This document shows positions 29,101-53,000 of a DNA stretch of 64,000 nucleotides, piece after piece. The stretch is taken from positions 11,160,001-11,224,000 of the forward strand of contig OZ059898.1 of NCBI GenBank assembly GCA_964057225.1, given 5' to 3'. The position numbers and the translations under genes were made by a program. Each line of letters starts with the position of its first letter. Position 1 is the stretch's first letter. A model generated the notes under the pieces. It had not been told where the DNA came from. It ran no database searches and was given only the letters and a program-made list of their open reading frames with translations. Source of the DNA: Auanema rhodensis (taxonomy: Eukaryota > Animalia > Nematoda).

Positions 29101-32100
29101 AAAGCTGGAAACGCTTCAAGAACATTTGTTGTTAGACTCACCGGTAATCTATACATATAGAAAATATATTTGTGTACTTCTTATAATTTAGGTCCACCGG
29201 TACTCGATCAAGGACATGAGACTATGGATGTAAAAGTTGATGATAGCTTAACTCTTACATGTAATGTTGTTTCTGGAACTGGAAATCTGAGTTACTCGTG
29301 GATGATTGACGGAAGACCTGTTGAAAATGGGGGACATAGCTCTACTGTGCAGGTTGCACAGATCCAGCATCAGCTTACAATAATAGTCTTTCAGATTTCT
29401 GATCGTCGTATTCAAGTGACAAATGCTCGTCTTAGTGATAGTGGGCAGTATGTTTGTATCGTACGCAATGAAGCAGGAGAAGCCAGGAAAACTTTTGATT
29501 TAGCCGTATTAGGTTTTTCAAAATTTTTTTCAGTTTTAGCATGGTAAACGATCTTTTTGCACATTTTAGAAGTTCCACGCTTCTTGGACATGACAAATAC
29601 GAATCCTTCAATTATAATTGGACGACCACAAACGTTGGATTGCTCGGTTTCCGGAACTCCCAAGCCAACGATTACCTGGATGAAGGTTAGTTAGTTTTTC
29701 ACAGTTTTTGCTACAACTAGTGCTATATTGAAATAATATGAATAACGAGCATATAGTAATGAGTAGGAAAACTTGTTTTTTCTCTTGTTTAAAATTGCTC
29801 TATTGAAAACGGAAAATTATTTCAAAAAAAAACTTTTAGCTAAACAATGAAAAAAAATATAAAAAATTTATTAATCGATTTTTTAAAAAATAATGTCAGG
29901 TAAATGAATGTTCAAGGTTATATTGCTTGACCCGTAATAACAATACTCACAGGATTTAAAAGAGTAAAAACATACATAAATATCCTTCATAAAAGAAATA
30001 GATAATTTAACTATATCATATAATAAAATTATATATATATATATATATATATTGGATAAACAAGTATGTATTCTCGGAAATAAGTTGAAAGATGGAAAAG
30101 TGGATTTGATTCTTTTGAATTATCTGAGTTTCAAAATGAGAGAGAAAGTTCTAAGGCCTCTGTTATATTTTTGAAAAAAGTTTTCTTTTGGAAAAAATTT
30201 GTAATATTGTATTTGGTTGCTGAATGATTGTTACTTAAAACAATGTTTCAGTTAAAAAAATATTGGATAGTAGTAGTATTATAAGAGAAAGACACGTGTT
30301 TACAAGGAAATTAAGCCTATTCGATGACAGGTATTAGTGGGGGGGAATCCAATCGAGTCAGAAATGAATGGGAAAAGCAAGGAAAAATGAATTTTCATTT
30401 CATTTTCTTCTTCATAAAACAACATTTAAATTATATATACCATATATAGAAAATGGCTAACAATAAGAATCCGATTGATAATGGATTGATAGATGTAGCT
30501 GAGCAGACACCGTATTTATTACACGTTTTGCCTCCTGCACAATCGATTCCCACACGGAAAATCGGTTTTTGAAATTGATCCATGATCTTGTATTTTCGAT
30601 ACGCATTCTGACATCTTCTATTGGCAGGCTTCTGAAATACAGCTTTATTAACCTTTAATGTTATCAAGAGACCCTCCTCCTTTTCTTTTCTAATGAGTGA
30701 ATACAATTTTTTTTGTAATTTTGTCAGCTAGTTTCATAGTAAAAAACTAAAGTTAAAGAACTATACGATAAACAAGACAAAACCTCAAGCAATAAAGCTA
30801 CAAGTCTCGTTCTTCTGTTCCCTCATTCTATCCCAGATGCCGTCAAGAAGAAATAATGGTTAGAAAATGAATGACATCGAGGCTCATCTCCAAACATGGA
30901 AATGAGATGGCTCTATGGACTAATGGTGGACTGCATGAGAGAACAAGCCGCTTTTCTCAATAAATCACAAGCTTTTTTTTTGAAAAAGAAAGGCTTGACA
31001 TTAGTGAACTGACTGATCCTTATTCACTACAATTTGGAAATTGTGAAAGTTAATCGAGCTTACTGATGATTGATGCTAATTTAGAAGCAACATGAGATCA
31101 ACCTGGACTATTCAAAATTCGTTGTTCAATATTGAAATTGCAAAATTTTAATCATAATGATATCCCACGGGTAAATCTTGCTAGTTTAAAAAATTTGTTT
31201 CTGTTGTTTGACGATTACCACACAAAACGATTTGCTGAGGTAGATATCGGACAACTATCTTTTCAGCTTCTCCATTTTCCTTCCCTTTCTATATATACAT
31301 GAATATATATTTCTCTTTTTCCTCACTACTCTCCTTGGTCAAAGTATTCTAAAATTCTTTTTTTTCTTTTATTTTTGGACAACTGTCTTTAGAATTCAAG
31401 CATTGTATTTCAAAATGACAACTTGTTGTTGTCTTAAAACCACGTTAAGCAGAAAATACATGGTGATAGCATGACATACATAAGAGACGAAGAGACATAG
31501 AGGTGGGAACAAGCTAATTGAAAGCTTCATCTAATTTTCTGTTCGAATACTACATTGTTATATGACCTGACGGCCTCTGTTCAGAAAGTCAGACTATTGG
31601 GACTGACCCTATTTCATTCGATCGTCTCTTCTTCATCTCGTTTAGTTGACATGCTCATCCACCCACAAACACACATACATCTCTCCGCACATATATACAA
31701 CATTTTATTTTTGGTTCTATCTAGCTCTATATCCATACTAATCAGGTAGTACGGAAAGAAACAAAACAACTATTCTCTCTTTCAAAGTATACAATTTTCT
31801 CACTTACACATCTCTATTCAGTAATATTTGAAACATGCTTAACATACCAAATTGAAATCATAGCAACAGAGCTGACAACGGTCTTCTGATGCAAATCCAG
31901 TATCTTGATCAATTGCTGGACAATCACAGACCATAAGATGTGATGCAAATCGAGCACATGGGTTTTCACATGTATTATCTACACATAGCTTTTCCAATCT
32001 GAAAATATTTAATTTTAGTTTTTAAACTACTAACATAGCTTCTTGTATTAGTTCGCACAGCTACTTGCTGTATTAGCATCAGTTTGCGGGTTCAAGTTTA

Positions 32101-33760
32101 AACATATTGCTTAGTCACTCTTATAGTTTAAAGAATATTTCACTCATTTAACATAAAATAAGATGAAAAAAGAAACAAAAAAAGGAAAAAAATAAAAAAT
32201 TTAAATCTGTAATGAATTTTTAATATTGCTCCCAAGCACTTTACGGTGTCTTTTTGTTCATTTAACATCATACTTCTCTAGTAACTTTCCAGTGCCAACC
32301 ACAAACGTTTTGTAATGAAAACGAGAGTTGAAGAAGAATGCTGGAAAGCAAATCATCACATTGCGTGTCTTTCATCCATTTTGCTTTAGCTCTCATCTCA
32401 TGTCATTCCACATAAAAATTGAGGATGAACCCTAAAGTTGACGAAGGATAGCTTAAAAGCTATTCGTTTATCATATCGTGATTAGAGGTCATAATACCTC
32501 AACCATATAAATATACATATGCATATATATTTCAGAGTTTATATACGCATAATCAACTCAAAATATATAATTGATCGTAAATTTTTAGTAAAAAAAGTTG
32601 ACAACGTCAAAAAAAAACCGTTTCCAATCAAAGGGTTAGTGTCAGTTTCAAATGAAGAGCTATGAAATGAAAAATAATTTTAATAAAATTAGTCTCTCTA
32701 TACTTTTTCCGTATATTAAGAAGGGTTAAAAGCTCATAATAATGAATATTATATTTTCTTTTTTATAAGAAAACATTCAAAAATTCAAAATATTGAGCAT
32801 TGACTATGGCAATAAGCTCTTCCCTATTTTCTCAATATTTCAAGTAAAAATATTCAATTAATTTGCAAATTTCTTTTTTTATGCAAACAATTTAAACTTT
32901 ATGTATTTATTTTTCATTCCATTGTCAAATTTTACATGCCTATTCATATCATAGCTTAGAAAAGTAAATCCTCGTCATTCAATCGGCTTGATCTCAATTT
33001 GCAACTTTTTTCATTTCGTTTTTCTTTCTTAGGTTCATACAAATTTTTGTTGCAACTCAATTTTAAAAATTGCCAGGAACTTGACTGAGTCCCTTTCTAA
33101 GCATTTAACTGATTGTGACAGGTTTGGTTTGTAAAAGGAGATAATAGCTCTGAACTTGCTGAATATGAAGTAATTCATGGAAAATGTGTACTTGAAGAAC
33201 AAACTCCAATCCACGTTAGCAAAGTGGTGAGTTAGAAAGAGAGATAGAGCAAAAGAGAGAGAGAAATGGGATGAGGTAGAAAAAAATCGAACAAATAAGC
33301 TTAGCAATTGAGAGAATATTTTTAATAACTCAAAAAAGGTTTTCTATCTGGATTGTCTCCTTAGTTTACATGTCGCTCACTCTGAATAGCCTGAAATCCC
33401 GCAGCGAATGTTAAAATAGTTACTTCAATTGTTCAAATTCAATGTAATGTCAGCTTTTCTGTTTCTTTCCTCCATCGTAGTTTTTCTTTATTGAGAGTAA
33501 TTGTGATTCTTGAGACAATATTTAGAGTAATTTTGTCTTCAGCTTATTCATATATGAATTAGAACAAGTAACTTAGAAATTATTGTAGTTATAAGTACAT
33601 GCATTCATGATTATATGATTGAAGTAAAAAATAATTGAAGCAACCGTTAAATAATCCAGGAAATTATAAAATGAGACTTCACGTTTTAAGTATGGAACTT
33701 CACGTTGAATATGCTAATCCCAGCGATGATAATATTTGATTTTTAAACAGACATGAGGGC

Positions 33761-33823
<63 letters not shown>

Positions 33824-36800
33824 AATAGAGAGAGGTTTAGATAGATTTTCATGTTGGAATCATATCCAAAGTCCATTTCTTCGTAAAAGTGAAAAGACAT
33901 GAATGGATGTATAAGTAAAATCTTGTATTAAAGCTAATTCTTTGGCATTATCAAGTGCACTCATTACGAAAACTGTTATTATGCTCTATGAATTTCCTTG
34001 AACTTGAAAGATAAACCAACTAGATCCTCTACGTTTTGTTCTTTGTTAAGTAAATGAGTTTGAACACCCCCTCCTCATCCCTCCCTCATTTCTTCTAAAT
34101 TGAGTCAGAGCGAATGAGGAAAAGAGCTTGGATATTCTCTAATCAAAGTCTTTTGCTTTTCCTTGTTAATAACATAATTATAAATAAACACAAAAGGAAC
34201 AAAACGGAAGGAAATAGAAAGAGAATTGCTTATACTAATAGATATTTATTATTTAAAAAGAGATGGCAGAAAAAGATGTAACATAATAGTGCAGTGGTAC
34301 TTCTTTTTACCAACCAACCTCACCCTTTGAACCCCTTTATTCAACGACCCCCCCCCCCCTTCTCTTCTTCGAAATCATTTTTTCTCCTACGTTTATCAGC
34401 AACTCTTGCGCTCATACCAATGAACCAGTTAAAGAAAAAGCATATTATAGTGACTGAAGAATTTCTCTTATGTCCAAAATTTTGTGGAAACGGATTAAGG
34501 GCAATATAAGGACGGAATGGTCTCTTTTCTGATCCTCATTAACTCTGTTCCCTCTTAATTCTCAATTGAAGAGATTATAAGCTAATTTATGGCTTGAATA
34601 TATTTTGTTCAGTTTTTTCCATAGTACACCAAATGTACATGATGCCGGACAGCTGGACCAAAACAAAAAAAATCGAAATCGAACTCCCCTCATGCTGGTT
34701 CAGAGCCGGTGCTTATTTCCAGCAGGCCAATACTATTGGATTGGTTGGAGATGGGAGAAAGGGAGAAATGGAAAAAGAAGAGACGCAAAAGGAAAGTTTT
34801 GATTGCCCCTTGAGGAACAATACGACCTGCGTTTCGTGTCAATGGTCTCCGAAAACCCAATCGAGATTGATAATCCTTTGGTTCAGCTAGCTGGGATTAC
34901 TTGTTTGACGAGAACAGCTCAATTGCCTTGCAAACTACCTAATTCGTTAAGGAAAGAGTATCGAGGGCATACTAACGTTTACAAATAGAAAAATGGATTA
35001 AAAGACGGCTGAAAAGCAATATTCTGAATTGCTTTAAGGTTCAGGGGAGAATGGAAAATGATTTAAGCAAAAATACAAATGGAAACATTATCCTTTCAGC
35101 TTCAATCATTTTAATAATTTTAATTGTTTCTATTCTCCGATTCTTTTTATTTTTGTTTTATAATCTTTCATTAATTTTCTTATTTAAACTAAGCTTTCTA
35201 GTATTACATGATCAAACTGTTGGTCCTTTTATTTGTTCACTTATGATAATTTGTTTAAATAAACTTAAAATAAAAGAAAAAACGTACTTTCGATCACAAT
35301 AAGATCCTGGTTGTTTCGTATGACATACAGAGTTTGAGCATTTTCCCGCAATACATAAGCGTGCCGAATCAGTATCATCGCACGGCAAGCCTTCAAGCTC
35401 AGCTCCATGCATACGACACCGAGAGCAAGCTTCTCGTTCCCATCGTTCACCATTAGGCCTGTAAAAGAGAATATTGCTTTTCATGTTAGCAACGTAATGT
35501 TCGAAGCTGATTCGACGTATTTTTCGTCCCTCCAATCAGAGAATATGTTTTTTCATTTCTCTTCTTAATATTCGTGGCATTCATTCTTCGTTATAATCTT
35601 GACAGAAAGACCTCTTTTATCTTCATCAAACGTAATGAAATAAAAGAAAAAAAACAAAAACATAGAGGAACATATGTTTTTTCGAGTTTTTGCCTGCAAA
35701 TTTACAAGAGAACAAGCTGATTCTGCTTCAATGAGCTTGCAAAGTTTTGCTTTCAACATTAAAAAGTGCACGATGACTTGTACATTTTACTCCGGAACTA
35801 CTATAACTATTTGGGTGAAAATAGAAGTTAGAAGTTGTTGTAATCATTGAAGATGAAAAGATGGATGATCAGTGATTATGGGCTAGTCTCACAATGTATA
35901 GATACCAAGCTGTTTCTCCCTTATTCTAAAAACGATTTGTTCTACTATCGTCTATACGTTCATTTCTTAGAAGTGTATCTCCCTGCTCTGTCTCTCTCCC
36001 TACTCTTTCTCTCACTGCACTCTCACGCCCTGCGCTCTCTCTTTCTGCTAACTCTCTGATCTTTCCTTTTGTTCTTTCTTTATGCTTTCTCTCTCTCCCT
36101 CTCCCTCGTTCACTGTCTTCTTAGTCCATCCCGTTCTTAATTTTCCAGGTTAGTTGCCATCCGTAGCTATGTTCACTAGGCAGGAAACCTTTCTATCTCC
36201 TATTCCCCTATCTTTCTATATATTTCGTTTTGTCTTCTTCTCTCGCTGTTGCTGACCAGTTTCTATACTTTATCCCTCTCTCTCACACCGAGTGTCAAAT
36301 GGTGATGTATTGGCAGTATGTTAAGCAAGGGAGAAGATGCTTTGAATGATTCATGGTTCTATCACGCCGATAAAAAGATATCCGGGCCGTTCTTATTTCA
36401 GCGTACTTCTCTCCAGCTCTTAATCAGAACCGAATCTTATAACTCATATGGAATGTCTGTTTAAGATACAAAACTCAAGCAAACATATTGTCCTGATAGA
36501 AGTTTCATCATCATCAAACATCATAGCAATAAGAGTTCAAGACAATGTTTCAAACTATTTTGATTTTTTTGTGGAAATCGGGCATCTTACGGTCCCATGA
36601 GACACACATATAACTCATTATTGACACTGTAAGAATATAAGGAAGCTAAGAACAGGAGGCTGAAATCAGGAATTACACATAAACGTCCCATTTCAGTCTC
36701 ACTATATCATTCAAGTACGAAGTCATAGTGAAACAACAAAAATATTCCAAAGGGTTAAATAACTAATCAAAGGACAATCATAATATCAGGAACATAGTTA

Positions 36801-39800
36801 AAAATATTTAGCTTGCATAGCATAGATACTCACGTTTCATATTACATTTCATAGAAATATTGTTGGTAATCCCTGCATTGTCACATTTGATTTTCTATCG
36901 TCACATTCTTAGCCATTTACAAGTTTTTAGCTTTCTAATTCTGACGTGACATTTGCCTCTTGAACGCATTATGTCGCGTTAGAAATGACTTTGCCCTTAG
37001 TTTGACCGACGACTGCTTCATCAACGTTACCTCGAAAGTATGGCTGTCAGAAGGCACATACGTGGCAAGAGATACAAATAGATAGATTTGTTCTATATAT
37101 AATTACGTACTCACTCTCTCTCTCTCTCTCTCTCTCTATATACATATATATATATATATATATTTGCCTCCTTCTTTCTTCCGTTCTCTATTTTAGGATC
37201 TTCTTTTCATTTTTATGTTTGGGAAATTTGGTTTCATGTTCTAGCAATGGGATATGCGTGAGAGCGCATGAAGCTCTCGGTTGTATTTCATAAAAGATCT
37301 GACTTTCATGCCGATTTTCCAAAATAGAATAAGTACAAGTTCATACCTATTGGAAACTGAATTCATTGTGGTTCGGAATCGTTCAAAAATCAATCTGAAC
37401 CTTTGACACTAATTCTTTGCTCCCAACGGGACACGTTTTGACGTCAGAATTACCAAATAATTGGAAGACAAGAATGACTATTATCTAATGCTCTAGATAA
37501 TTTAGAGCAGCTTGTAAGCGGTAACAGACAAGCATGGCTTGTGTCGAGTCAGACTTGAATGCATGACTGATTCAAGACACACTAATTTGAACAACGACAT
37601 AAGATAAATTCAACAAATCAGTGGCAAAATCTTTCAACTCAGCAATGAAATTTAATAAAATATTTACCGTAAAATATTATGATGATGTGCAGCTAAGCAC
37701 TGATGGTTTGCATTACCACAACATAAATAACAATAATTATCTTCTTCAACATCACATTGACATTCTTGCATACCACGTAATGAGCAAGCTGATACACAAC
37801 TGAAAAGAATAATATTTGTAAAAGAATGTTTTTTTCTACTAATTCTAAAGAAAAAAAAGAAAAAAAATGTTTCATGTTGTTAAATGTGTAAAAAAGTTTA
37901 GTATAATCTGTCATTTAAACATAAAAAAATATATCAAATACAAAACTTTGAAAAATTGAAATACATCTGGCAATTTTTTTTGTCTATTCTCTAATAAAAT
38001 ATCATGATTTTCCCATATATATATTCTAAAATGTCTTTCTTGACGAGTTTTTTAAAGTCAAAAAGCTTATGAATAATGAGATTATTTACGATAAACAGAA
38101 TGATGTTGAAATGAATAAGCTATTGTGCTATCAGCATTGGAATTCAATACGATTTCTCTGTTTTCACAAAAATTCTTTTCATCTTCGGGCGTTTATTTTT
38201 GAAAAATGAATTCAAAACGGTATTTTCATCATAATTCACTTCTCAGCTATTCTAAAATATTTCTTTTTTTTTCATTTTGGAAAGAAAAGTTTATTAAAGT
38301 TCAATGAAAATTCCCTGTAGCTCAATGAGATGGACTACCGCCGACGTCTGCCCTCAAGCGCTGTCCTTTGTATCTCTTTTGTCTTTCTCCAATCATCATG
38401 GATATCATCAATAAAATTCAGTTATTTCACATTGTTCTATAGCATTTTTTCAAAATGGAAAATAGCATTCCGTGTCTATTTAGATCTCATTTGAAGTACA
38501 ATTAGGATGAACTAATCGTAACAAATATAATTTTGTTAAATGGAAATGATGAAAATGGAAGAAAATGACTAAGAGAAACTAAAACAAATTGATAGAATGG
38601 GAGAGAGAGAGAGAGCTGAAAGCGAATTCTAGAATCCCTCTTCTCACCAAGCTATGTTGCATACAATTCTATTTATTTCGGACTTTTCAATCATATTTTA
38701 AACTAAAAATTGGTTCTCCCTTTCTATTTGGGTCATTTATTGCATAAGAATAATTAATTGAATGTGATTTGTAGTGGAAAAAGATGATTTGCTAATCATC
38801 GGAATTAATGTGTTCTCCAGAATGACTACGAAAAAAGTTCAATGAATAGCCATCTCACTGAACAATCTTTGTCGAAATTTTATGGTTTGAATACAAGATG
38901 AAGCTTAGTTAACATTAGATTCATACACCCCTTCGTATTCTGTTTGGGATTCAACATCATTCTGTCAAACATTCTAATCGATTATAGTCATTTATGATGG
39001 TTGAGGGAGAGATGAAGCTGAGACTGACACAGTGAAATACGAAATGAAAAGCAATAGATAGATAGAAGTGCCTTTCTATCTTAACATGGACACATGAAAC
39101 AGATGATGATGAAAGATGTCAAACTCTTTCTCTTCTTCGTTATTGCGCTTACTATACTCTCTTATGTTGAAACTACAAGATAGAGAGACAAAAACTACAA
39201 TTGAGAGAGAAGGCCCAATCGGAGAGAAAACCATTGCATTTTCACATTATCGTCTCGTCATGATCTTGCTTGAAACTATTCCCCCGAGGTCACTCTGCTT
39301 ACTAAATGGACTTCAACAAAGCATTGTGCTCAGACCAAAGAAGTCAGATTACATACATACATACACATGAGAAATCTCGTCATTGTCTATGTTTCAAATT
39401 TCTCTCTCTCATTCTTGTTATCCTTTCTGGTTTTCAAAATTCAACATTGCTCATTTGACTGGTTTACTCGGTTTAGCCATCCATGAAATCTGCTCCGTCA
39501 TGTACCTGAGTTTCAGGTAATGCAACTCATGGCTTGTGAGTGTGTCAAGTCCCTAAATCCCCTCCTTGCCTCTGTTATTTTCACATTTCCTCAAACGATT
39601 TCACCTTAATATTCTCAGTTCACCCAGTTTGTCAGTTTCTGACCGAATATAGAGAGACAGCTGTTGTGGGAGCAATGAAAAGGTGAAGAGTGGATGCTTA
39701 AGTTGGTTGGAAAAGAACAGGAGTGGGATGCTGAAGCCAAGCGCTAACTACATCTTTCGCTCTAACTAACTGGAAGAAATAGAAATATAATTTTAATAGC

Positions 39801-42800
39801 CAGGAAATGTATATAAATATATATATAAATAGATATTAGAATTGAATCACGGTTTTAATCCTATTCTTTGTCAGAATCAGAAAAAAAAAATTCTGAGTAA
39901 AATTTTATTTTCTCAATAATATCCATAACGAAAAATAGGACAAATAGAATTATTAAGTTATAAATATGATTCGAAATTTGATACAAAAATACAAAATATA
40001 TTTTGCATATTTCAATATATTTGCTTAATAGTTCCTTACTATCCATATTTTTGTTTTATATTTCTTTATATATTTAGTTTTTCTATCTTAAGCTATATTC
40101 ATTCTTTTCTTGCTTCTGTCTTTTCTTCGTCTCCATGTCAGCATACACGCATTTTAGACAATTGTCCCAATGGGTAGTAAAGAAGCAAAGTTGGAATTTA
40201 AGCTCAATACGGAAATCTCAAAGAATGAGAGATAGAAACGAAGAAAAAGAAAAAGAGAAACTGAAATAAAACACAATTGTGAAGATCTTATATACTTTAT
40301 TTGCTTTGGATTGTATCAGTTAAGCTTGGTTGTGTCTATGATGCTCGTTCTAAGCATTGTCTCCCTGGGTTACCGAGAAGATTAGCCATATACACCTCCC
40401 GATACATTTCATTTCTCTTCCCTGCATGAATTTGATAACGGAACTCAGAAGTTGAATTCAAACCAAGTCCTCACGTTTGTTTTGATGTCTGAACAAAACA
40501 AAACAAAAATGGCTTCAGGACGTGGCCCACAGAGCAAATCATGTGAAGACCGATGGTGGAACCTTATGATCAAAGCTATTACAACTTATCACAAATTGAA
40601 TAAATACATAGCAAGAATCTATACTACTTTAAAGAAAAGTAGATAAATATACGAAGATACTTGACGCTTTTTCATTCGTCAAGACTGTAATTTTTTGAAG
40701 ACAGCATGAACATTGGGTATGCAAACTCGTTTTGTTCAAGTTGAACGATCAACAGAATTAATGGCAAAAACATATTTGATATTCGCGTTTTTTAAAGCAA
40801 TTTCTATTAATTTTTTTTCTGTTTCGGTCTGACTTCAAAGTTAATGTGAATCGTAATTTTGTTCCCCCTTCTCTTTTCGCCCTCCCCCTCTCTGTTCGAA
40901 AGAGATGCATGGCTTAGCCTTTTAGCCACCCCTTACTCTCATCTTAGTTTGTCAGCAGGGAAGGGCCAATCCTTGAAATGCGGATATCCGTTATGACCTG
41001 GACTATGAAATAAGGGAAACAGTGAATGTGAGAGAAGATGAAAAAAACGTATGAACAACTAGAAAGAGCTTTGTATTGATTAAATAAATGAAAAGAATAG
41101 GTAGAGCAAAAAAAAAAACAAAAGAAAAAGGTAGAAAGAAAACAGAATAAAAAGATTAGAAAAGGACAATCTGTGTGAAGCTTGATGTCTTGTCTCATTC
41201 AAGCTTCTGGCAACAAAATTTTCATTGATATCAAAAGGAATTCAATTTCCTATCGAATTTGAAGAATTATTTTGTTTCTATATAATATTGGCATGTTGTC
41301 CTTTTCGATACATCTGAGGCAAGCCACTTTGTGTTCAATTGGCCTTTGCTTCGATGCCCCGAGAGTTCAAGTTTTTTTTCTTTTTTTCTCTTGTTTCTTT
41401 ATTTTGTCTAATCTTTTACTTGGTATCTTTTTCTCTTTTAAGCTTTTTTATTCACATGTTTTGTCACAATCTTTCTACTTACTTTATCATTGAGAAAAAA
41501 GATTGGAGAGGGGGGAGAGAAGGAGACGGAGCAAAAAAGCAAAAAAAAGAGAAAGCTAGAGGACGAGAAAAACTGATAGTAATGAATAACAATAAAGCTA
41601 AGGTGTCGATTTTCATAGCTCATCCTGCCTTTGCGAAAGATTTAATTCAATTTTTATGAGTGCATCCAAGCCAACGTCATACTCATCCTGCTCAGACACG
41701 CATGATTTGTTTCATCTTCTCTCAATTCTGCTCGGTCGATCTTTCTATCGCGCTTTACAAGTTTTTTTCGTTCTGACCCTGAGTATCCCCTATCCCACCC
41801 AAGGCTACCCTCAACCTCCTTTCCCTCTTTCTCGTAGTTCACCCTGTTGGCTCGTGGGAAATTCGATAGCAGCTCCCCCAGCGGATGTCCCTTACTATGA
41901 AGCAAGATTAACTGCTCAAGTCACTCTTCATGCTTGTATTTCGCCATTAGATGAGTTCATAGATGGAAACGTCTCTTTCAGCTTAAACTTGATAGTTCTT
42001 TCACTCATTGTTAGATTTTCTAATTTTTTTATACAAAAGAAAGAAAAACTCTTAAAGATTATTCAATAAACGTAGACAAAACTTCTGTTAATAATATTGT
42101 TTCATTTTGAATTGAAATACTTGTTGCTCTAGTTCGGAACAACAATCTCATACAGATAACAGTCAATTCAATGAAGAGAATGAAGAAGAATAGAAGGACG
42201 GATAAAGCTTGTATATGAATGAAAGGCAACTGACTATTATACACGTTTCTCAGTCATTGTTCTCTTTCTCAGTAAATACTTTGAAATTTCCAATTTCTAA
42301 GCAAAATCAAATTATTGCTTGAAACGAAAGGAGCAATGGAAGCAGAGAAAAGAGGAATAGCGGTATGAGATGGCACAGACGATATCCTCATACGAAAAAA
42401 AGACAAAAATGGAAATAATCCAACATATACAGCAACTTGCGTGCGTAGTAAGAAGAAACAAGAAGATTTTTGAGAGAGAGAGAGAGAGAGAGAAAGAGAC
42501 AAAAGGGTGATAGTTTGTTCTATAAAGAAGTTGTCGATGTTGTATTTTTCATATGAATATATGTATTTATTCTATTTTCTTTCAAATTTCCAGGTTTTAC
42601 TTTAAAAAACGCCTGTGTATGTAAAGTGAAAATGAGAAAAAGACAGATGTAATGTATAAGAACACATACATAGTTTGTGTTGTATATACATCTACATACA
42701 TCTATGTGTATATTCATCTATTCGACATACTTTCCCTCTTTTTACATATATGGTCTTTTCCTATTATACATCTATGAAGCTATCTAAAAAGATGATGATC

Positions 42801-42873
42801 CTTCTCATCATTATTCGACGAGAAGATTGATGTGCAATGGAAGCTTTTCTATTACTTGACATCAACACAGCAA

Positions 42874-42913
<40 letters not shown>

Positions 42914-45900
42914 GAAATGCAATGGCATAGTGAATAAGTTTTAGATTTTATGGTTATATAGATGCAATATTCCATTTATCTTTAATTTTCAATTGAAATA
43001 GACCTTCAATGCCAATATAAGTTAAACATTGAATATGATGAAAGATAATAATAATGATAACAGATGAAATGAAATCATATAAACGATTTTCAATGGATTT
43101 CCTATAAGATTGATAAATTATTTTTCATTAAACTACGTACGTCACAGCTATTCCGTACTTTTCCTTTTTTCTCTAACTATTATGTTTCTCTCAAACTTTT
43201 TCTCGTTCTCCATCAAATCTGTCTCTCAATTCCAAATCCTGAGGAAAACCTTTATTCTAACATCTTGACTTAGAAACAAATATATTTTGATAACTATGTG
43301 GTTGTTAGCTATATAGCTGAAAGCTGAAAACCATTTTTTATGCCGAGAAAAACGGCTTTTTTTCCGTTTTTCGATCGTCTTGATGTCAGCAACAATCAGC
43401 TTTGAATACCAAGTAAGATGAGCTCTCATTTCAAGGAAGAGAGTAAAGAGAAAGAATTTGGATAGATGATAGAACAAGTGAACGAGAGTAAAAATGGTCA
43501 TCGAAAGACAGTTGAATGATGGAGTTGGTACTATGAGCTTTACAACTGGAACACATAATGCTGAACACTAAGAATAATTAAATTTAAATATGTAAATCAT
43601 CACAACTGGTTAGAGTGTCTGTTTAGAGAAAAATTGGAAATATAACTTATAATGTAACATATGCATTACACTCAGCAATCAAATCATTCTCTATCCTTCT
43701 ACCAGAACCCTTTGAACTTATTGTCAAACTTCTGTCTTACCCTGTTCATTTTCCTTTCTCTCTCTCTCTCTCTTTATCTTTCTTTCTTTCTCTTTTCGTG
43801 TCACAAAACCTCTGTCACTTTACTGACTCAATCGGAGACGAGAAAAGTTGAAAAGAAAGTTTATCATACACAGGACGTATGTACCAATGAATATTTCTAC
43901 ATCCTAAAATTTAGTTTCATCTCTTAAAATCAATACATAGAGAAAAGTATTAACAGCCAAAATTACAGTTTGGAAATATTTTTATTGTTAGTTTTAGAAA
44001 ACACATGTTTATATATATATATATATATGTGTGTGTGTATATGTATATATACATATATACATGTATACTAACATATAATTCGAGTTCTAGCTCAGATTTT
44101 AAATTCTGGGCAACTTAATTATTTATATATGTAGTAGTATCCTTTATTTTGCAGTAAATTACCTAAATTATGCCGACACAAGAGTCGCAGAGTCTTCTAC
44201 TTTGTCTTTGTTCCTTCTCCCCCTTCTCCTTCTCTCTCTCTCTCTCACTTGATCTCTTCCCTCTCCCCCCCCCCTCTATAAGAAATATTCTCATGCAATA
44301 ACTGAGAAACTCTCTTTCCCTCGTTCTCTCTTTCATTCTCTCTCTCTCCACTTCTCTCTTCTTTCTTGTCTTCTTCTATTTGAAGGATTACTCTCCACTT
44401 TTCTCTTTCAATAGACATTGTGCCACATTGCGAGAGACATGGTTCAACAGGGAAATATTTCGTTTTTCTTTTCTTTTTTTTCATCGCCGTCTTTTTTATC
44501 CTCCAAATGTGTTCCATACACAGCCATACACATACACGCACACATATGCCCGAAAAGCTCATTTTGATCATCATCTGTCCTCACCCTTTCTGTCTTCAGA
44601 ATCCTTTTTTGCTGTTCATCTCCTCACCTAATTTTCATAATCAATGTTTTCATCACCACATAATTTTACAGCAAATATGCAGCAAATCTGCTACGCTATG
44701 GTAGCAGCTGAAGATAACATTGTGCTTTATCAATTAGCAATGGCTACATTTGTTCATTGCTTAAAGCCTCTCAGATGGCCATTTTCTCTATATCCTATTC
44801 CCCTCTCTTGCTTTCACCCCTCCCCCCGCCTCCTCCCTATTCACACCGTCCTTTTTCATCTTCTCTATTTCTCTTCACAGCAGCTTAGCCAGAAATCATC
44901 TCTCAGTTATTCTCGAATTTTTCGAAAATTTATTGATGTTTAGGAAAGTATTAATTGCCTTTCGCCTACCTTCACAAACATCAATCGTTTTTTCTCCGCC
45001 TATGAGATGCGGAATATATTATTTTGTTTCAAGCAAAGAAAAGAAAAGAAAAAAGGCTAAAAACAACAAAAATATTTCTGAATGTTGACTTGAATAGTAA
45101 CAGTGACGGAATAGAAATGAAATGCCTCTGATATAATAGATATGCTAGATATAGAGAAAAGCAATACAGATATTTCTGTATCAACGGAATGTAACAGAAT
45201 TTCCTCTTCTTCACTATTTTACATACTCCTCACAGTGAATAAAATTTAGATGACAGATAATACTATAACAGATTCAAAACCGAATTAGAAAATATCAATT
45301 AAAACAATGAAAAAAAATGAAATTAATTGGTTAACTCACGTTCCGTTTCTACAAATGGTTGCGGAATTTTCTGAACAAATAGTGTTTTCACGAGTACATG
45401 CTTGACCATGTGAAGACTGATGCTGGTGCTGGAGGTGGTGCATCAAACTGCTTGTCTGCTCAGCAGATACCATCAGAGATGATGTCAGCATAATAGTAAT
45501 ATACAAGTATGTTGTCAGCACTGAGTAACCATGATGAGCAAAAAAGAATAAAGACGACGGCGAATATGGTACTGAAGAAGAGGCACGACAGTTTGGTATT
45601 GAACAGCACGATGATGACGCAGAAGTTGCTGAATTAGCAGCAATAGTAATATTAACTGAAGATTGTTTGGTAGTCAAGGCAATAGTCTCAATAACTGCAT
45701 CGGCTAAAGAATCGAATCTAGACGACAACGACGACGGCAACCACGTTGACGACGAAGACGGCTGTGTTGAGCTACAGCTAGACTCAACTGAGCCATCATC
45801 TATCGTTGCTTTTGAAAATGATAATACTTCATGTTGATTGTCATAGGACGAGCATTGGTTTAGAGAATTGTGGAGAATACAATTTTTATGTAATACGAAA

Positions 45901-46947
45901 TCATCTTGTCGACGATCCATGTCATTCCTATGAGGACGTGCTCGTCCGCGTCTGCAGATGGAGCACGTGACGAATGGATGAGCTAAACGTGTAAAACTTT
46001 TTGAATTAAACTCATCAAACGACAAAAAAAATAAAACGATATTATAAAAAAAGAAAAGAAGATATATTATGTAACAATCTAAAAAAATAATAATATAAAT
46101 AGTTACTTTGATGCATAGTTAAAATGGGGGGGGGGGGGGGGGTAATTCAATATATTTAAGTTGAATTAATATAGGCGTAAATATCAGCTTAAGTTCGTAT
46201 TTCTGCTCAGGGGGCAGCTGACTAGAGGACGTAAGGATGTGTGAGGAAGCTTGATGGTGCCGGGACACTCACCCACAGGCACACACGCACAGCCTTCTCT
46301 CTCTCTTTCCTCTGTTCCTCCTGGTCTCCACATAGCTCATTAGACTCCGCCCCATTTTAGTTGAAGCTCCGCCTATCTTCAGCTCTGGAGCACAAGGAGG
46401 ACACGTTGAAGAGGGATGGAGATTAAACTAAATAACCTGATGACCATATATGATCACAGAAAATAGAAGTTAATTGGTTTGGGAGTTCAATTTGAGATCA
46501 AGACTCAACAAGGACAAGATAATCAGCATCATATTTTAAAACGTTATGAAGCAAATAGCTGCTATCTCTCAATGATTAATGCATGGAATTGAAATAGTTA
46601 TGATAAAAGAATGTTAAAACATTTTACTTTTCATTTCAAGAACAACAGAAAACTAACAAGAAAAATGATATTTTCTCTCATTTTTAATGTTTAGACACAT
46701 GAACAATGATTTTTTTCAGTGATGTTGTGTATTCTATAAACATAAAATTATCGAAGAAAATGATTTACTAGCCAACCAAAATATTTAGTTTTAAACAAAA
46801 AAAAAGTTCTTTTTACTTCAAAGGAAAACTTTGGTTTTAAAAAATTAAAATCACAAACAAAAAATGTAATAACAATATTGGATGAAAAGAAAATGAATCT
46901 GACAGATTATGGCTTATTTTAGTTTTTCAGGGGGTGGGCTACAAGGT

Positions 46948-47000
<53 letters not shown>

Positions 47001-50000
47001 TTTTATTTTTTATCTATTCATCACTTTATTACTCTATCTCTCTCTCATTCTCTCTCTGTCGCATTGATATGAGCTGATTTTTTGGTTTTGTGGAATAATT
47101 TAGTGGTACATAATAAAATCTCAATCAATATAAAGCTATATAGATAATTCAAGCTGAATAATTTTTATTCAGAAAAAACAAGAGGAAAAACCACCTGCTT
47201 CTATAGATAAGCATATTAGCTATGATAATTTAATATGGTTCTGCTTCAAACATTCATACTAACCATACACAGCATAAAATATCATAGCATAAGCATAAAG
47301 GAAAGGATTTAGAGAACATATTGGGTGCCCTTTTTATGATCAGGAATAAACAACTTAGATTTATGGTGACAGTCGATTGATTTAATATTTTTATATTATA
47401 TTATATTATATATATACATACATATATATAATATTGTTTTACACTAAAAAAATGTTCTACCACAATCATTGATTATAGTTTTTTCTTTCATAAATGATCA
47501 AAAAAATAGTAAAATAAAACGTAATATTTTACAAAAAAAAAAGAAAGAGGAAAGATAGAAAAAGAGAAAGGGCTAGTTTTTCGAAACTTGTATTAGCTTT
47601 TACTTAAAACGATAAAATACATTTCTTCCCTTCTCTCATACCCCCCCCCCTTCTAGAACTATCATTTTCCTGAAATTCATTGCTGCAAATTTATTTTCAT
47701 TCTCATCTAGCCTGAAAATAGATTTGTCTTATATTTAATTTTTTTTCCGTTGAATCAATCCTCAAGAAAGGAAAACTGCTGTATTGCCTAAGCCAGATTC
47801 TGCCTGATTTATGGCAAATGGTTTTGTTCTCATTTGTTGTGTGGCAAAGAAAAGAAAAGCATAGAGATATTAAAAGAAGGAGTTAACCAGAGACATAGAG
47901 AGAGAAGATTAGGATAGTAAAAAAATCTAAAAAGAGAGAAGGAGAGAGAAAGACAACGAGAAATAGAGGGAAAAGTAAGATGAAGTTAGTCATTTGAGAA
48001 ATTTATAGTTCAGTTCAAGGCTAACAATAATATAACTGTTATCCATATGTTATTTACTTCATATTCTAGCTGAAATGTATAAAAGAAACATAAAATTTTT
48101 ACTTTTTTTCTTGTTTTTGTATAAAACAAAATAAGTAAAAAATGAAGAAAAAAAAACTAATTCACTGTCAACAATATGTTGATTAGGAATAAGATGAAAA
48201 TTATAAACAAAAAGTTTTGCAGAATGGTATCCGACTGAATGATACAGATCTTGTCTTCCATAATGATCGTCAACAACTTCTGATAGAAGATGCTCAGGTA
48301 TTTGAATGATCTTTAATCATAAGAAATAGTTAAATATCAAATAAAACAATATTTAAATAATAACAAAGAAAAAAACACGAGAAAAAGTCATTTCTATGTT
48401 GTTCTTATCTAAGCTTGCAACTTTACTAAAGAAGACTTTGTGACATTTTCTTGGCTTTCTCCAGGAATAATTCATTTGTCTGAGCGCGTCCTTTACTTAT
48501 CCACCAAGCTCAGATAATTTTCTTTTGAAAATACGATACTAAAGACAGGAGATTTTGAAAAATTGTGGTGATAAAATGGAAAAAGAAGCTTTTAAGGTTT
48601 TATGAACTATAGAACTGAGCATGAAATCAAAAAAGAATTTTATTTTGTTTTTTTTCTAATTTAATTCATTATTAATAATAATATTATTATATTATAGCCT
48701 TCTGATGCTGGACGTTATACATGTTTGGCTGAAAATAAACCAGGAAGAGCAGAAAAAGATCTTATTGTGGCTATTCTAAGTAAGATCATGAGCATTACTC
48801 AAATTCATCTCTATCAACTTCTAACATCGTCCCTACTCTCTTTCATCATTCTACTCTTTCACTCAACTTCTTTTTTTCTCTCGCTTTTCTTTTCTATCCC
48901 TCTCTCACTCTCATACATACATAGCCGTTCATTCTGGTATTCATCAGAATTGATTATGAATTTTATACATTTTAGAACCACCACAGATGGCTGTTAAAAA
49001 CGTTGTCAAAGAAGTTCAACAATCTGATCAATTAACCATGGAATGTCCCATCCAGGTTCAACACATCAATGAATCTAATATTTCATTCTAAATTTAGGAT
49101 CACACGGTTGATTTTATGTGGACGAAAAATGGAATTCCAATCACGACATCTGATAAACTTCAAGTTTCTGTTCGCCGTGATAAGCTTTATCTTATGGGAG
49201 CTGAACCATCTGATGCTGCTCAATATTCTTGTATTGCCAAGAATAGTGCTGGAGAAGATCAGGCTATATTTGATACTGTTGTCAACGGTAACTTCAAACT
49301 TTGAATCACAAGATATCATTAATCTAATTTGTAGTTGCTCCAAAAATAGCTGGCCCATCGTTCCGATCAGTTGATGCTATTTTAAATCAAACAATACAGC
49401 TGCTTTGTGAAACAAGCGGTGTGCCTGCTCCTGAAGTCGAATGGCTACTTGATGGTCGTGTTTTACTCCAAAGCGAGAATGTTCAAGTTAGAGCCGAAAA
49501 CAGTGTTGTTTTCTTTTAAAAAGTGATTTCAGCTTATTGAAAATGGACGTGTTTTGATTCTTTCTGGAATTCAGACATCACAGGAAGGACGTTATACTTG
49601 TAAAGCGGAAAATAAAGCCGGAAAAGCTGAAGCTGACACATATCTTCAAGTAACAGGTAATTAAACAACTTCCGAAATGAAAGATATATTTGACGTACGT
49701 GGCGGAAGTATTTAAATTTGGTTTAAAATTAGGAAGTTATTTCTGAGTGTTCATTTATAAAAAGCGGTTGATCATCAAAAATGTAATATCAAACGCTAAT
49801 AAATTCTGTTTTTCAGCCCCCCCAAGAGTTCAAATGCAAGCTGATGAAATGAAAGTTGTAGCTGGTCGTGGAGTTACTATTAGATGCGAAGTTGGGTGAT
49901 AATCATGTTCAAGATATTTATATAACATATAGGTATTTGGAAATCCTGCTCCTTCTGTTGAGTGGCTGAAGAACGGTCAACCGTTCCGTTCAGAACTCTT

Positions 50001-53000
50001 ACAAAGCTCAACAAATTTAAGATATCTTCATCTTAGAGAAGCTCATGTTGAAGATGCTGGACGGTACAAAAAAGAAAAATTCGAGTATAAAAACTTTAAT
50101 TTTCAGTTATACTTGCATTGCTACGAATAGAGCTGGCGAACAGAGAACAAGCACTCAACTTCATGTTCTGGGTAATTTTTAAGTTTTAATTTATTAAAAA
50201 TTCTTTGATATTTATAAGTAAAGAAAAAAATTGATTTACATTGCTTTCAGTTATTCCAATGATCGAAGATGGTGAAAGAATAATACAAGTTAAAGAAGGA
50301 AATGATATGAGTATTGACTGTAATGCTAATGGAATTCCTGCTCCAACTATCAGTTGGAAAAAAGATGGACAAATTCTTGAAGGTAAAATTATTAATATGA
50401 AAATATGAAACAAAATGGTTTTCATAGGCAAGGAAATCTCAAGACTTGTTGTTCCTGCTGTTGATCTAAGTGATGGTGGAAGATATACATGCATTGCGAA
50501 AAATGAAGCTGGACAAGCTCAAACTGATTTTGCTGTTGATGTTTTCAGCAAACCAAAATTCAAGGAAACTAGTCGTGATATCAAAGTATGTTTTAAGTGT
50601 GTTAATTAAATATCATGCAATTAATCAGGTGATTGATGGAGAACGAGCACGTATTGAATGTAAAGTGGAAGGACATCCAACACCAACTATTACGTAAGCT
50701 TCACAATGTGGATAAAATGTTTTATTTTTCTTAGATGGTTGCGCGGTGGGCGTCCAATTGAAGATATGTCGAATTTGATTTTATCCCCACGTGGAGAAAC
50801 TCTGATGATTCTTAAAGCTCGTCGTGCTGACGCTGGATCTTATTCATGTGTAGCTAAGAACGGAGCAGGAGAATCAGAAGCTGACTTCACGGTAAAATTA
50901 TAGGAAAAATCATCGTTTGCAACAAAATGTGAATTATTTGTTCAGGTTTCTGTCTTTACTGCTCCCCACATTGATGAATCAATCGATCAAAATCCAAGAG
51001 TTGTTCAAGGAAAACCATTAATGTTCACATGTCCAGTGTTAGGAAATCCGTTACCTAAGGCATCATTCAACTTTATTCAATTTTTCATTTTTTTTCCATA
51101 TTCAGGTTGAATGGCGTAAAGATGGACTACCATTGTCTTCAGATTCACGAATTGAAGTGGTTGATGGCAGACATCTTAAGATTAATGAAGCTACCGTATG
51201 TACTTCTATGATTCCTAAACTTACTTCTTTCTAAACGTTTTAACATTTTTTGATTTATAATCATGATAATCCATTTGGATATTTGGTAGATTTTCGTATA
51301 TTTTATATTTAAAGACTGATGACGAAGGTCGTTATACATGTCATGCAACTAACGAAGCAGGCTCATTAGACACACATTTCAAACCAGAAGTCATAGGTTA
51401 GTTAACTATTCATATAATTACCATCTTACATAAATATCTAATATATATTCTTAATATTTAATTTTGAACTTATTCGTTTCTGAATTATCTATTATACCAT
51501 TTATTATAGCTCCACCAAAGTTCCAACGTGAAGGAGAATCTGTTTATGAAGTTATTGAGCATGATTCTATAACATTAGATTGTGCAGTTTCAACAGATCC
51601 AAAACCTGAAATTAATTGGTATCGTGGAGATCAGCCATTATATTTGACAGAAAATATGGTTATTTCACCTGATGGAATGGTAGAAGCAATCATATCTTTG
51701 AGTGAATATACTAAGATTTTCTTTTCAGCAGTTAACTATAAGATCTGCTTCTCTTGGTGACGGTGGTAAATATATGTGTAAAGCAAGCAATGAGGCTGGA
51801 TCATCTGATAATGATTTGATTCTCAAGGTATGTGAAGACATTTAATATCAAAGACATATATTCAACTTATTAAAGGTTTTGATTCCACCAAAGATTGATA
51901 AATCCAATATTATTGGTAATCCATTAGCAATTGTTGAACGTGGAATCATACTTGAATGTCCTGTTTCTGGAATTCCCCAGCCTGTAGTATCTTGGACTAA
52001 AGATGGTGTGCCAATTGATCTTAGTGATAGCCGTATTGTTCTTACCCAGGTATTTTATTTATTTTAAAATTTAATTATATATAGTTATACTTTATAGAAT
52101 AATCAAACATTTGGAATTGAAGGAGTTAAAGTTTCCGATCAAGCTCGCTACACTTGTGTTGCTACAAACAAAGGAGGAACTGTTGAACAAGATTTCAATC
52201 TCGAAGTTTTATGTAAATTTTCGTTGGTTTTTTCAATGAGGTTATCAAAAAAATTTGCAGCTCCTCCTGTCATGGATTACAGTGAACAACAAATGATAAC
52301 TAAGCGAGAAAATGATTCCTTAGTTATCAACTGTCCTGTTCGTCCAAGTACTGATCCAGGATCACCTATCTCTGATGTATCTTGGGTTAAGGATGGACGT
52401 CCCCTTGATCCGGAGACATCTATAACCACCAAAGTATATAAATAAAAAATTTTCATTTTCACACTATTTCTAACTATTTGATTATAGTTCTCAGCTGATG
52501 GGAGAAGACTTTCAATCGATCATTCACAACTTACTGATGCTGGAACATATACATGTGTGGCTTCTAACCGAGCTGGAGAAACGACTATGGACTTCCAAGT
52601 GGAAATTCTCTGTATGAATCTTGCTACCGACAAGTGCCGTGAATTAGAATATGCTCACATAAACAAAAAACGTGCTGATTATAATCGACGACAAACTGAA
52701 CGTGAACTTCAAACGAGATCACGACAGTCGTTGAATCAGCGAGCTTTATCACATACGTCGTCCTCGCCCCTGTCAATAACAACGCAATCTAACTCTAATC
52801 CTAATCCTGATGACGTTCCAACTGCTTCTTCCAGACCATTAAATTCATTACCTCACTTATCAGTGTCTTCCATTTCGCAACATTCCAATTCTTTATCAAA
52901 TTCCTCTTCTCAATCTGATCTTTCGCATATTCCCAATTCCACTATTTTTGATGCTGATACTCAAACCACATATCCAGATGTTCAATTTATATATGAACAA

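Follow-up and report, generated by a model that had tools for sequence, protein, structure and literature searches.

The 64,000-nucleotide stretch of the Auanema rhodensis genome that was analysed here (GenBank assembly GCA_964057225.1, contig OZ059898.1, positions 11,160,001 to 11,224,000 of the forward strand; hereafter the window) contains a hemicentin gene on the plus strand and, antisense to it and within one of its introns, a five-exon gene that encodes a Cys-rich protein. Taken as a whole, the evidence is probably best explained by a non-catalytic tandem of ADAM10/ADAM17-type domains that acts as a surface-tethered binding protein and whose gene is nested in hemicentin. Judged by sequence identity, the nested gene is the orthologue of C. 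elegans F15G9.5 (UniProt Q10037, NP_509637.1, annotated as “uncharacterized protein”). It belongs to a known, annotated and uncharacterised nematode family, and the locus itself is not new. We have high confidence in the combined assignment of the gene as an F15G9.5 orthologue with the architecture described below.

Gene structure, transcript and family

The five exons lie on the minus strand and join in one frame, with a coding sequence from 45920 to 30434 and a stop codon at 30431-30433 (positions are those of the window; Table 1). The joined frame runs for 446 codons uninterrupted by a stop and, counted from its first in-frame ATG, at 45920, encodes 411 amino acids including 38 Cys. All splice sites of the nested gene are canonical GT..AG sites, with GTGAGT, GTAAAT, GTACGT and GTATGT as donors and pyrimidine-rich acceptors ending in AG. 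Exon 1, which has its donor AC/GTGAGT at 45340/45339, is open in the coding frame from 46118 to 45340, and its other two frames are rich in stop codons. It encodes a Ser-rich extension of 125 amino acids, followed by a signal-like hydrophobic segment and the beginning of the first of two repeats.

Transcription of the gene is documented by transcript contigs from four sequencing runs of a single study, which show the presence and structure of a transcript, not its expression level or exact ends. In each of the four runs a single contig, about 1.7 kb long, includes 31848-31998, 35288-35457 and 37667-37799 (contigs aligned to 31825-37824) and skips both introns at the predicted sites, from 31998 to 35288 and from 35457/8 to 37667/8. 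At 31848 the loose end of the contigs is the start of exon 5 in reverse complement, and at 37799 it is the end of exon 1 in reverse complement; together with the two skips, this means that all four junctions are seen in RNA. Since the junctions occur in nucleic acid that lacks the introns, its source must be RNA, and since the ends of the skipped introns read CT..AC on the plus strand, the transcript derives from the minus strand. The word depth of the spliced mRNA is 22-38. The contigs reach 650-654 nucleotides past exon 2, which, together with the 93% of sampled words of 45340-46025 that are held by the four runs (run search with exon 1), places the 5' end near 45993. They reach 568-591 nucleotides past exon 4, and if they are collinear with the genome the 3' untranslated region would be about 370-390 nucleotides long and extend to about 30050. 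An earlier sequence-only reading of the window had proposed that five exons splice in frame, had quoted one peptide string for each repeat and had named the predicted junctions as something to look for in RNA. The exons indeed join over 446 open codons at GT-AG sites, both strings span the junctions exactly as they were given, and each of the four junctions occurs in the transcript contigs.

With blastp, the window product is 74% identical to C. elegans F15G9.5 over 271 amino acids (E 5e-153). It is 86% identical to the orthologues of Ancylostoma and Cylicocyclus, 79% to those of other Caenorhabditis species including C. brenneri, and 37-43% to those of Trichuris and Trichinella. These values fit a clade-V-like nematode as the source of the window. 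The Trichinella and Caenorhabditis orthologues share 40% identity with each other and retain all 30 Cys. C. elegans F15G9.5 also shares a 90% cluster with a C. nigoni protein. In an exhaustive HMMER search, a profile with exons 4 and 2 as its two rows matched 32 proteins, several of which were 250-330 amino acids long with two matched stretches. These proteins came from every major clade of nematodes, and two further searches extended the family list to 37 and then 46 matches. The family spans Caenorhabditis, Pristionchus, strongylids, filariae, Strongyloides, tylenchids, aphelenchids, Steinernema, relatives of Ascaris, Romanomermis, Soboliphyme, Trichuris and Trichinella. Every named match in these searches, which yielded up to 46 matches, was a nematode protein, and no homologue outside nematodes was found. 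The gene is among the most conserved uncharacterised nematode-specific proteins that we met in this analysis.

The family alignment shows a layout of about 270 amino acids: a signal peptide at the N-terminus, then repeat 1 (16 Cys) and repeat 2 (14 Cys), and lastly a short hydrophobic tail at the C-terminus. This count of 16 and 14 Cys is kept in nearly all of 30 family members, and in an alignment with 14 orthologues every Cys column is filled in the window protein. The two repeats align to each other with 26-29% identity and with all 14 shared Cys in register (C..C..C-x4-C-x3-C..CxC..CxxCC..C..C..C..C), and are therefore homologous. An insert in repeat 1 bears an extra, nearly invariant CxxC. 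The window gene is like C. elegans F15G9.5 and the orthologues across the phylum in its two repeats, its Cys count and its hydrophobic tail. It differs from them in its much longer introns (15.6 kb; the figures for C. nigoni and Trichinella are about 5 kb and 0.9 kb) and in having an open Ser-rich N-terminus of 125 amino acids instead of a start codon that adjoins the signal peptide.

The product had been described from the sequence as a chain without prodomain, HExxH motif or disintegrin domain that ends in a hydrophobic tail resembling a glycosylphosphatidylinositol (GPI) attachment signal, and this description agrees with what a motif scan, Pfam and inspection of 30 orthologues returned. 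The spliced window product contains no HExxH, and Pfam found no Reprolysin, propeptide or disintegrin (PF00200) match in the exons or in the 30 orthologues. Some UniRef entries of the family are named ‘Disintegrin domain-containing’; these names are automatic and were not reproduced by Pfam here. At the end of the window protein come SATS-INPLS, 14 hydrophobic residues and then the stop codon, and the tail occupies 30434-30502 within exon 5. Across the family, small residues follow the last Cys, then a spacer and then 12-20 terminal hydrophobic residues; the sequence of this tail diverges, but its character is kept. In a tail survey of 30 orthologues, nearly all of the 29 that were scored have this GPI-signal-like layout. 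The terminal hydrophobic stretch is followed by no or few residues, which is not the layout of a transmembrane segment with a cytoplasmic tail. By inspection, the C-terminal tail would thus have the layout of a GPI-attachment signal.

A literature search found PMC3096668 as the sole paper that names F15G9.5. The text of its section 6 describes F15G9.5 as a muscle filament or dense-body protein, while its own Table 2 and Figure 4 list F15G9.1. We set this muscle localisation aside as probably a slip for F15G9.1; the mention gives no localisation for F15G9.5.

Nesting in a hemicentin intron

A GBD_Hemicentin domain scoring above its Pfam cut-off is followed on the plus strand by many I-set immunoglobulin (Ig) exons, which identifies the host gene as hemicentin. 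The nested transcript (about 30050-45993) occupies most of the host intron and points with its 3' end towards the upstream hemicentin exon. The exon on the far side of the intron was located by a motif scan; tblastn for the same exon gave noise only. The antisense position in a giant hemicentin intron, which the sequence-only reading had put forward, stands with the boundaries 29686-48222 and with PF23560 as the mark of the host.

That reading had also suggested a look at the corresponding him-4 intron of other nematodes. Six other species were checked (C. nigoni, Pristionchus entomophagus, Steinernema hermaphroditum, Bursaphelenchus xylophilus, Trichuris suis and Trichinella zimbabwensis), and in all six an antisense orthologue lies inside an Ig-repeat gene or between its annotated halves. 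In C. nigoni it lies antisense between two hemicentin gene models. The host model contains VWA_4 and GBD_Hemicentin besides I-set in five of the six species, and the Trichuris model contains I-set/Ig only. In three of the six, the part of hemicentin ahead of the nested gene measures 2888-2955 amino acids, which points to the same position. Furthermore, the gene models of Dictyocaulus viviparus (P0047) and of a Steinernema carpocapsae cluster (P0046) end in an antisense translation of the Ig exon 29557-29685 (55% identity, E 1e-9), for which the matching antisense stretch in the window is 29415-29663 on the minus strand. The same hemicentin exon must therefore flank the gene in these nematodes too. 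The nesting seems to date from the base of Nematoda, and such persistence is rare for nested genes.

The nesting could also be read as a sign of function. The protein could sit at the membrane by a GPI tether and serve hemicentin, or a basement-membrane component next to it, as receptor or assembly factor, and the nesting could be kept by a shared regulatory domain and co-expression. The antisense nesting in an Ig-repeat gene in each of the six species, five of them with an identified hemicentin, would fit such a role, as would the same flanking exon in three further species and the extreme conservation of the ectodomain. However, nested genes may stay in place simply because relocation is hard, and the ADAM Cys-rich domain is not known to bind hemicentin. 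A receptor for hemicentin is clearly unlikely.

Public gene annotations stop or split hemicentin exactly at the intron of the nested gene: C. nigoni and Steinernema each have two models, and in Bursaphelenchus an N-terminal model ends at this point. In Pristionchus hemicentin is annotated as one model of 5404 amino acids. In the P0047 and P0046 models the spurious antisense peptide replaces the GPI-like tail and is an annotation artefact. The host intron in the window also contains microsatellites of CT/GA dinucleotide and GAT-type trinucleotide repeats, at 33750-33840, 42270-42500, 42860-42930 and 46930-47070.

Probable relation to the Cys-rich domains of ADAM10 and ADAM17

The Pfam, PDB and fold tests used exon pieces, the 79%-identical C. 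brenneri orthologue (P0049) and the family alignment, and the window protein was compared in scripts. AlphaFold2 modelled the C. brenneri orthologue with a mean predicted local distance difference score (pLDDT) of 83.9 for the whole protein and 87.6 for a single repeat. Foldseek against the PDB, with probabilities of 0.98-0.99, had as its top matches the disintegrin plus Cys-rich region of ADAM10, which came first (E 7e-4, probability 0.99), and below it ADAM17 and then metalloproteinases of the P-III type from snake venom. A VIA search of 48,161 representative chains, which is independent of Foldseek, gave 10 chains with a Z of at least 2, and all of these were ADAM10, ADAM17 or ADAMTS-type metalloproteinases (among them 5L0Q with Z 5.2 over 90 amino acids, 9E6K with Z 4.8 and 2M2F with Z 4.2). 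VIA-align places repeat 2 on residues 564-646 of ADAM17 (Z 5.5) and 550-648 of ADAM10 (Z 4.9), and repeat 1 on residues 549-646 of ADAM10 (Z 4.8). For the 62-residue membrane-proximal domain (MPD) of ADAM17 (2M2F), 61 residues were aligned with a root-mean-square deviation (rmsd) of 2.6 Å. In an ESM Atlas structure search the five nearest clusters were ADAM10 endopeptidases, ADAM17 and ADAM10_Cys-rich, with template-modelling (TM) scores of 0.46-0.50. The structures 8ESV, 6BE6, 8SNL and 2M2F are among the matches in the structure lists.

The Foldseek, VIA and ESM Atlas searches thus agree on two tandem domains with the ADAM10/17 Cys-rich fold, as the sequence-only reading had supposed. On the modelled fold, the product is two tandem ADAM10/17-type Cys-rich (membrane-proximal) domains with no other ADAM module. 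The Cys framework of both repeats (CxC ... CxxCC ... three closing Cys) presumably matches that of ADAM10/17, which agrees with the structural alignments. Because the fold matches are exclusive, the whole domain is covered and the Cys framework is presumably shared, common descent with the ADAM10/17 Cys-rich domain is the best reading, and as far as models can tell it is very likely.

One of the closest known systems is the Cys-rich domain of ADAM10 (SUP-17/Kuzbanian; 5L0Q, 6BE6, 8ESV), which is the best match in three structure libraries. Residues ~550-648 of ADAM10 superpose on the repeats with Z 4.8-5.2 over 71-91 residues, and the CxC...CxxCC framework is presumably common to both. In contrast to ADAM10, the window family is a tandem pair without prodomain, catalytic, disintegrin, transmembrane or cytoplasmic parts, and the sequence-profile match is insignificant. 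Similarly, the whole 62-residue MPD of ADAM17 (ADM-4/TACE; 2M2F, 8SNL, 9E6K; PF16698) can be aligned with an rmsd of 2.6-3.1 Å and 26-30% identity, but the Pfam match stays below the gathering cut-off and the CANDIS stalk, the transmembrane segment and an attached protease are lacking. The extra CxxC of repeat 1 resembles the thiol-switch motifs of the ADAM17 MPD. Precedents for non-catalytic ADAM domains as pure binding modules exist in the protease-less disintegrin-like/Cys-rich pieces of the P-III metalloproteinases from snake venom and in catalytically dead ADAMs, of which ADAM22 is an example. Chains of the venom enzymes occur in the Foldseek lists. Both precedents retain the classical disintegrin and ADAM_CR type domains, however, and owe their state either to processing or to lost catalytic residues, whereas the window family is a separate gene of the ADAM10/17-type domain alone.

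Several observations weigh against a surface-tethered tandem of ADAM10/17 domains. Firstly, the likeness to ADAM10/17 that the sequence-only reading had drawn from the Cys spacing stands in the fold searches and the Cys framework, but no sequence model gives it significance. None of the Pfam models exceeded the gathering threshold for the exons or the orthologues. ADAM17_MPD (PF16698) is the sole recurring Pfam family, with 16.8 bits for exon 2 (E 0.0085) and 19 bits for the orthologue P0025, both below the cut-off of 26.2. It was matched by just two of the 30 family members (E at least 0.029), and PF21299 (ADAM10_Cys-rich) was never matched by exons or orthologues in Pfam. Searched against PDB sequences, the family and repeat profiles found no ADAM10/17 chain even at E<=10 and gave chance matches only (E>0.2); single exons and the exon 2/exon 4 profile had no ADAM match among PDB sequences, and the ESM Atlas feature search gave no usable match. 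Secondly, the structural Z of about 5 and the rmsd of 3-5 Å are modest, which is normal for small disulfide-rich domains. Thirdly, the calls of GPI tail and signal peptide come from inspection and hydropathy.

Lastly, the start of the window gene is odd. In the orthologues a Met lies a few residues ahead of the hydrophobic signal core. In the window gene no ATG adjoins the signal-like segment (45465-45548), and this segment begins about 125 amino acids in when counted from the ATG at 45920. An out-of-frame ATG at 45925, 5 nucleotides upstream of the ATG at 45920, begins an upstream open reading frame of 22 codons; it runs over the main start and might influence how the nested gene is translated. 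Ahead of an internal Met, which would leave the h-region too short, the main frame stays open for 178 codons, and no further ATG lies between the one at 45920 and this Met. The transcript contigs span the entire region upstream of the signal-like segment. The Ser-rich extension of 125 amino acids has no relatives in a word-index protein search with exon 1 (259 amino acids); strongylid gene models also have Ser-rich extensions, of 30-50 amino acids. The hydrophobic segment may then serve as an internal signal or signal-anchor and is possibly still cleaved after ..VSA.

An alternative to ADAM descent is a nematode-specific Cys-rich fold that resembles the ADAM10/17 Cys-rich domain by convergence and has an unrelated function. 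This would account for the missing significant hidden Markov model match, for a structural Z of just about 5 and for the lack of homologues found outside nematodes. Yet every chain with a Z of at least 2 among the 48,161 belongs to the ADAM/ADAMTS Cys-rich region, Foldseek and the Atlas agree with this, the structural alignments extend over the full domain at 20-30% identity, ADAM17_MPD is the only Pfam match that recurs, and several UniRef entries bear a disintegrin-domain name given automatically. Convergence is therefore very unlikely. The position within another gene, the missing protease and the odd start-codon context in the window could point to the decaying remainder of a duplicated ADAM gene or to non-coding antisense transcription of the hemicentin locus. 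Both are refuted by conservation and RNA evidence, since the open reading frame is intact over five exons, the mRNA is spliced and has a word depth of 22-38, and identity to the proteins of other clades of nematodes is 40-86%, all Cys being retained.

Possible function and other features of the window

Known contacts of the Cys-rich domain in ADAM10/17 are TspanC8 tetraspanins, substrates, membrane lipid and the catalytic domain of the enzyme itself. The nested gene encodes a protein that would be built solely from this domain, which ADAM10 and ADAM17 use for partner recognition and self-regulation. As a non-catalytic ADAM10/17-type tandem, the protein would enter the secretory pathway and be held by a tether at the plasma membrane, on its outer leaflet. 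There it would work by binding alone, through the surface that ADAM10/17 use to recognise partners or substrates. A free double copy of this surface could compete for or scaffold partners of SUP-17/ADM-4, or could bind matrix. Conservation of this strength speaks for a partner that is fixed and essential. The protein could also have some other binding role.

More specific roles can be proposed with less confidence. It is possible, if somewhat doubtful, that the protein modulates the ADAM pathway as a decoy or adaptor, as was suggested by the sequence-only reading. A more elaborate proposal would make the F15G9.5 family a dedicated non-catalytic partner in the nematode ADAM10/17 system. Its GPI-tethered double recognition domain would then compete for TspanC8 or substrates, or link these to hemicentin at basement-membrane attachments, and its residence throughout the phylum in a single hemicentin intron would reflect obligatory co-regulation; we consider this unlikely. 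A role in modulating sheddases would make the gene an endogenous regulator of a new kind, and if it has no sheddase role it would still be a clean case of domain capture and long-term nested synteny. The C. elegans orthologue makes the function, the GPI anchoring and the links to SUP-17, ADM-4, TSP-12/14, Notch, BMP and HIM-4 accessible to standard genetics. In a literature search we found no paper on the F15G9.5 family as a stand-alone tandem of the ADAM10/17 recognition domain, on its GPI-type tail or on its phylum-wide antisense nesting, and these three points may not have been described before.

Table 1. Features of the nested gene and of the hemicentin host gene, in window positions.
Feature	Position	Strand	Evidence or remarks
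Exon 1	open frame 45340-46025; transcript ~45993 to 45340	-	5' leader ~45993-45921; coding sequence from ATG 45920
Hydrophobic segment in the signal-peptide position of the orthologues, ending ..MVSA/EQ	45465-45548	-	hydropathy and family alignment
Exon 2, core of repeat 1 (CxC ... CxxCC)	37668-37799	-	junctions in transcript contigs; sub-threshold ADAM17_MPD match
Exon 3, end of repeat 1 with conserved extra CxxC, and start of repeat 2	35288-35458	-	contigs, family alignment
Exon 4, core of repeat 2	31848-31998	-	splice sites, contigs
Exon 5 (coding), with the end of repeat 2, a stretch of small residues, GPI-like tail and stop	30431-30631	-	contigs, tail analysis
Hemicentin galactose-binding-like domain GBD_Hemicentin	17193-17597	+	Pfam PF23560, 33.4 bits against a cut-off of 27
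Hemicentin Ig exon that directly follows the nested gene on its 3' side	29557-29685	+	ends ..ITWMK; donor AAG/GTTAGT
Hemicentin host intron holding the whole nested gene	29686-48222 (18,537 bp)	+	flanking exons continue one Ig domain
Next hemicentin exon, middle of the same Ig domain	48223-48297	+	acceptor TTTGCAG/AAT; NGIRLND..LLIEDAQ

Elsewhere in the window, another hemicentin intron holds an open frame of 318 amino acids on the plus strand (52557-53513), with a Ser-rich start, later charged ERRR/EEQ runs and no Pfam match. Two nearly identical open frames of 137 amino acids (8394-8807 and 9674-10087, plus strand) lie 1.3 kb apart and look like tandem paralogues.

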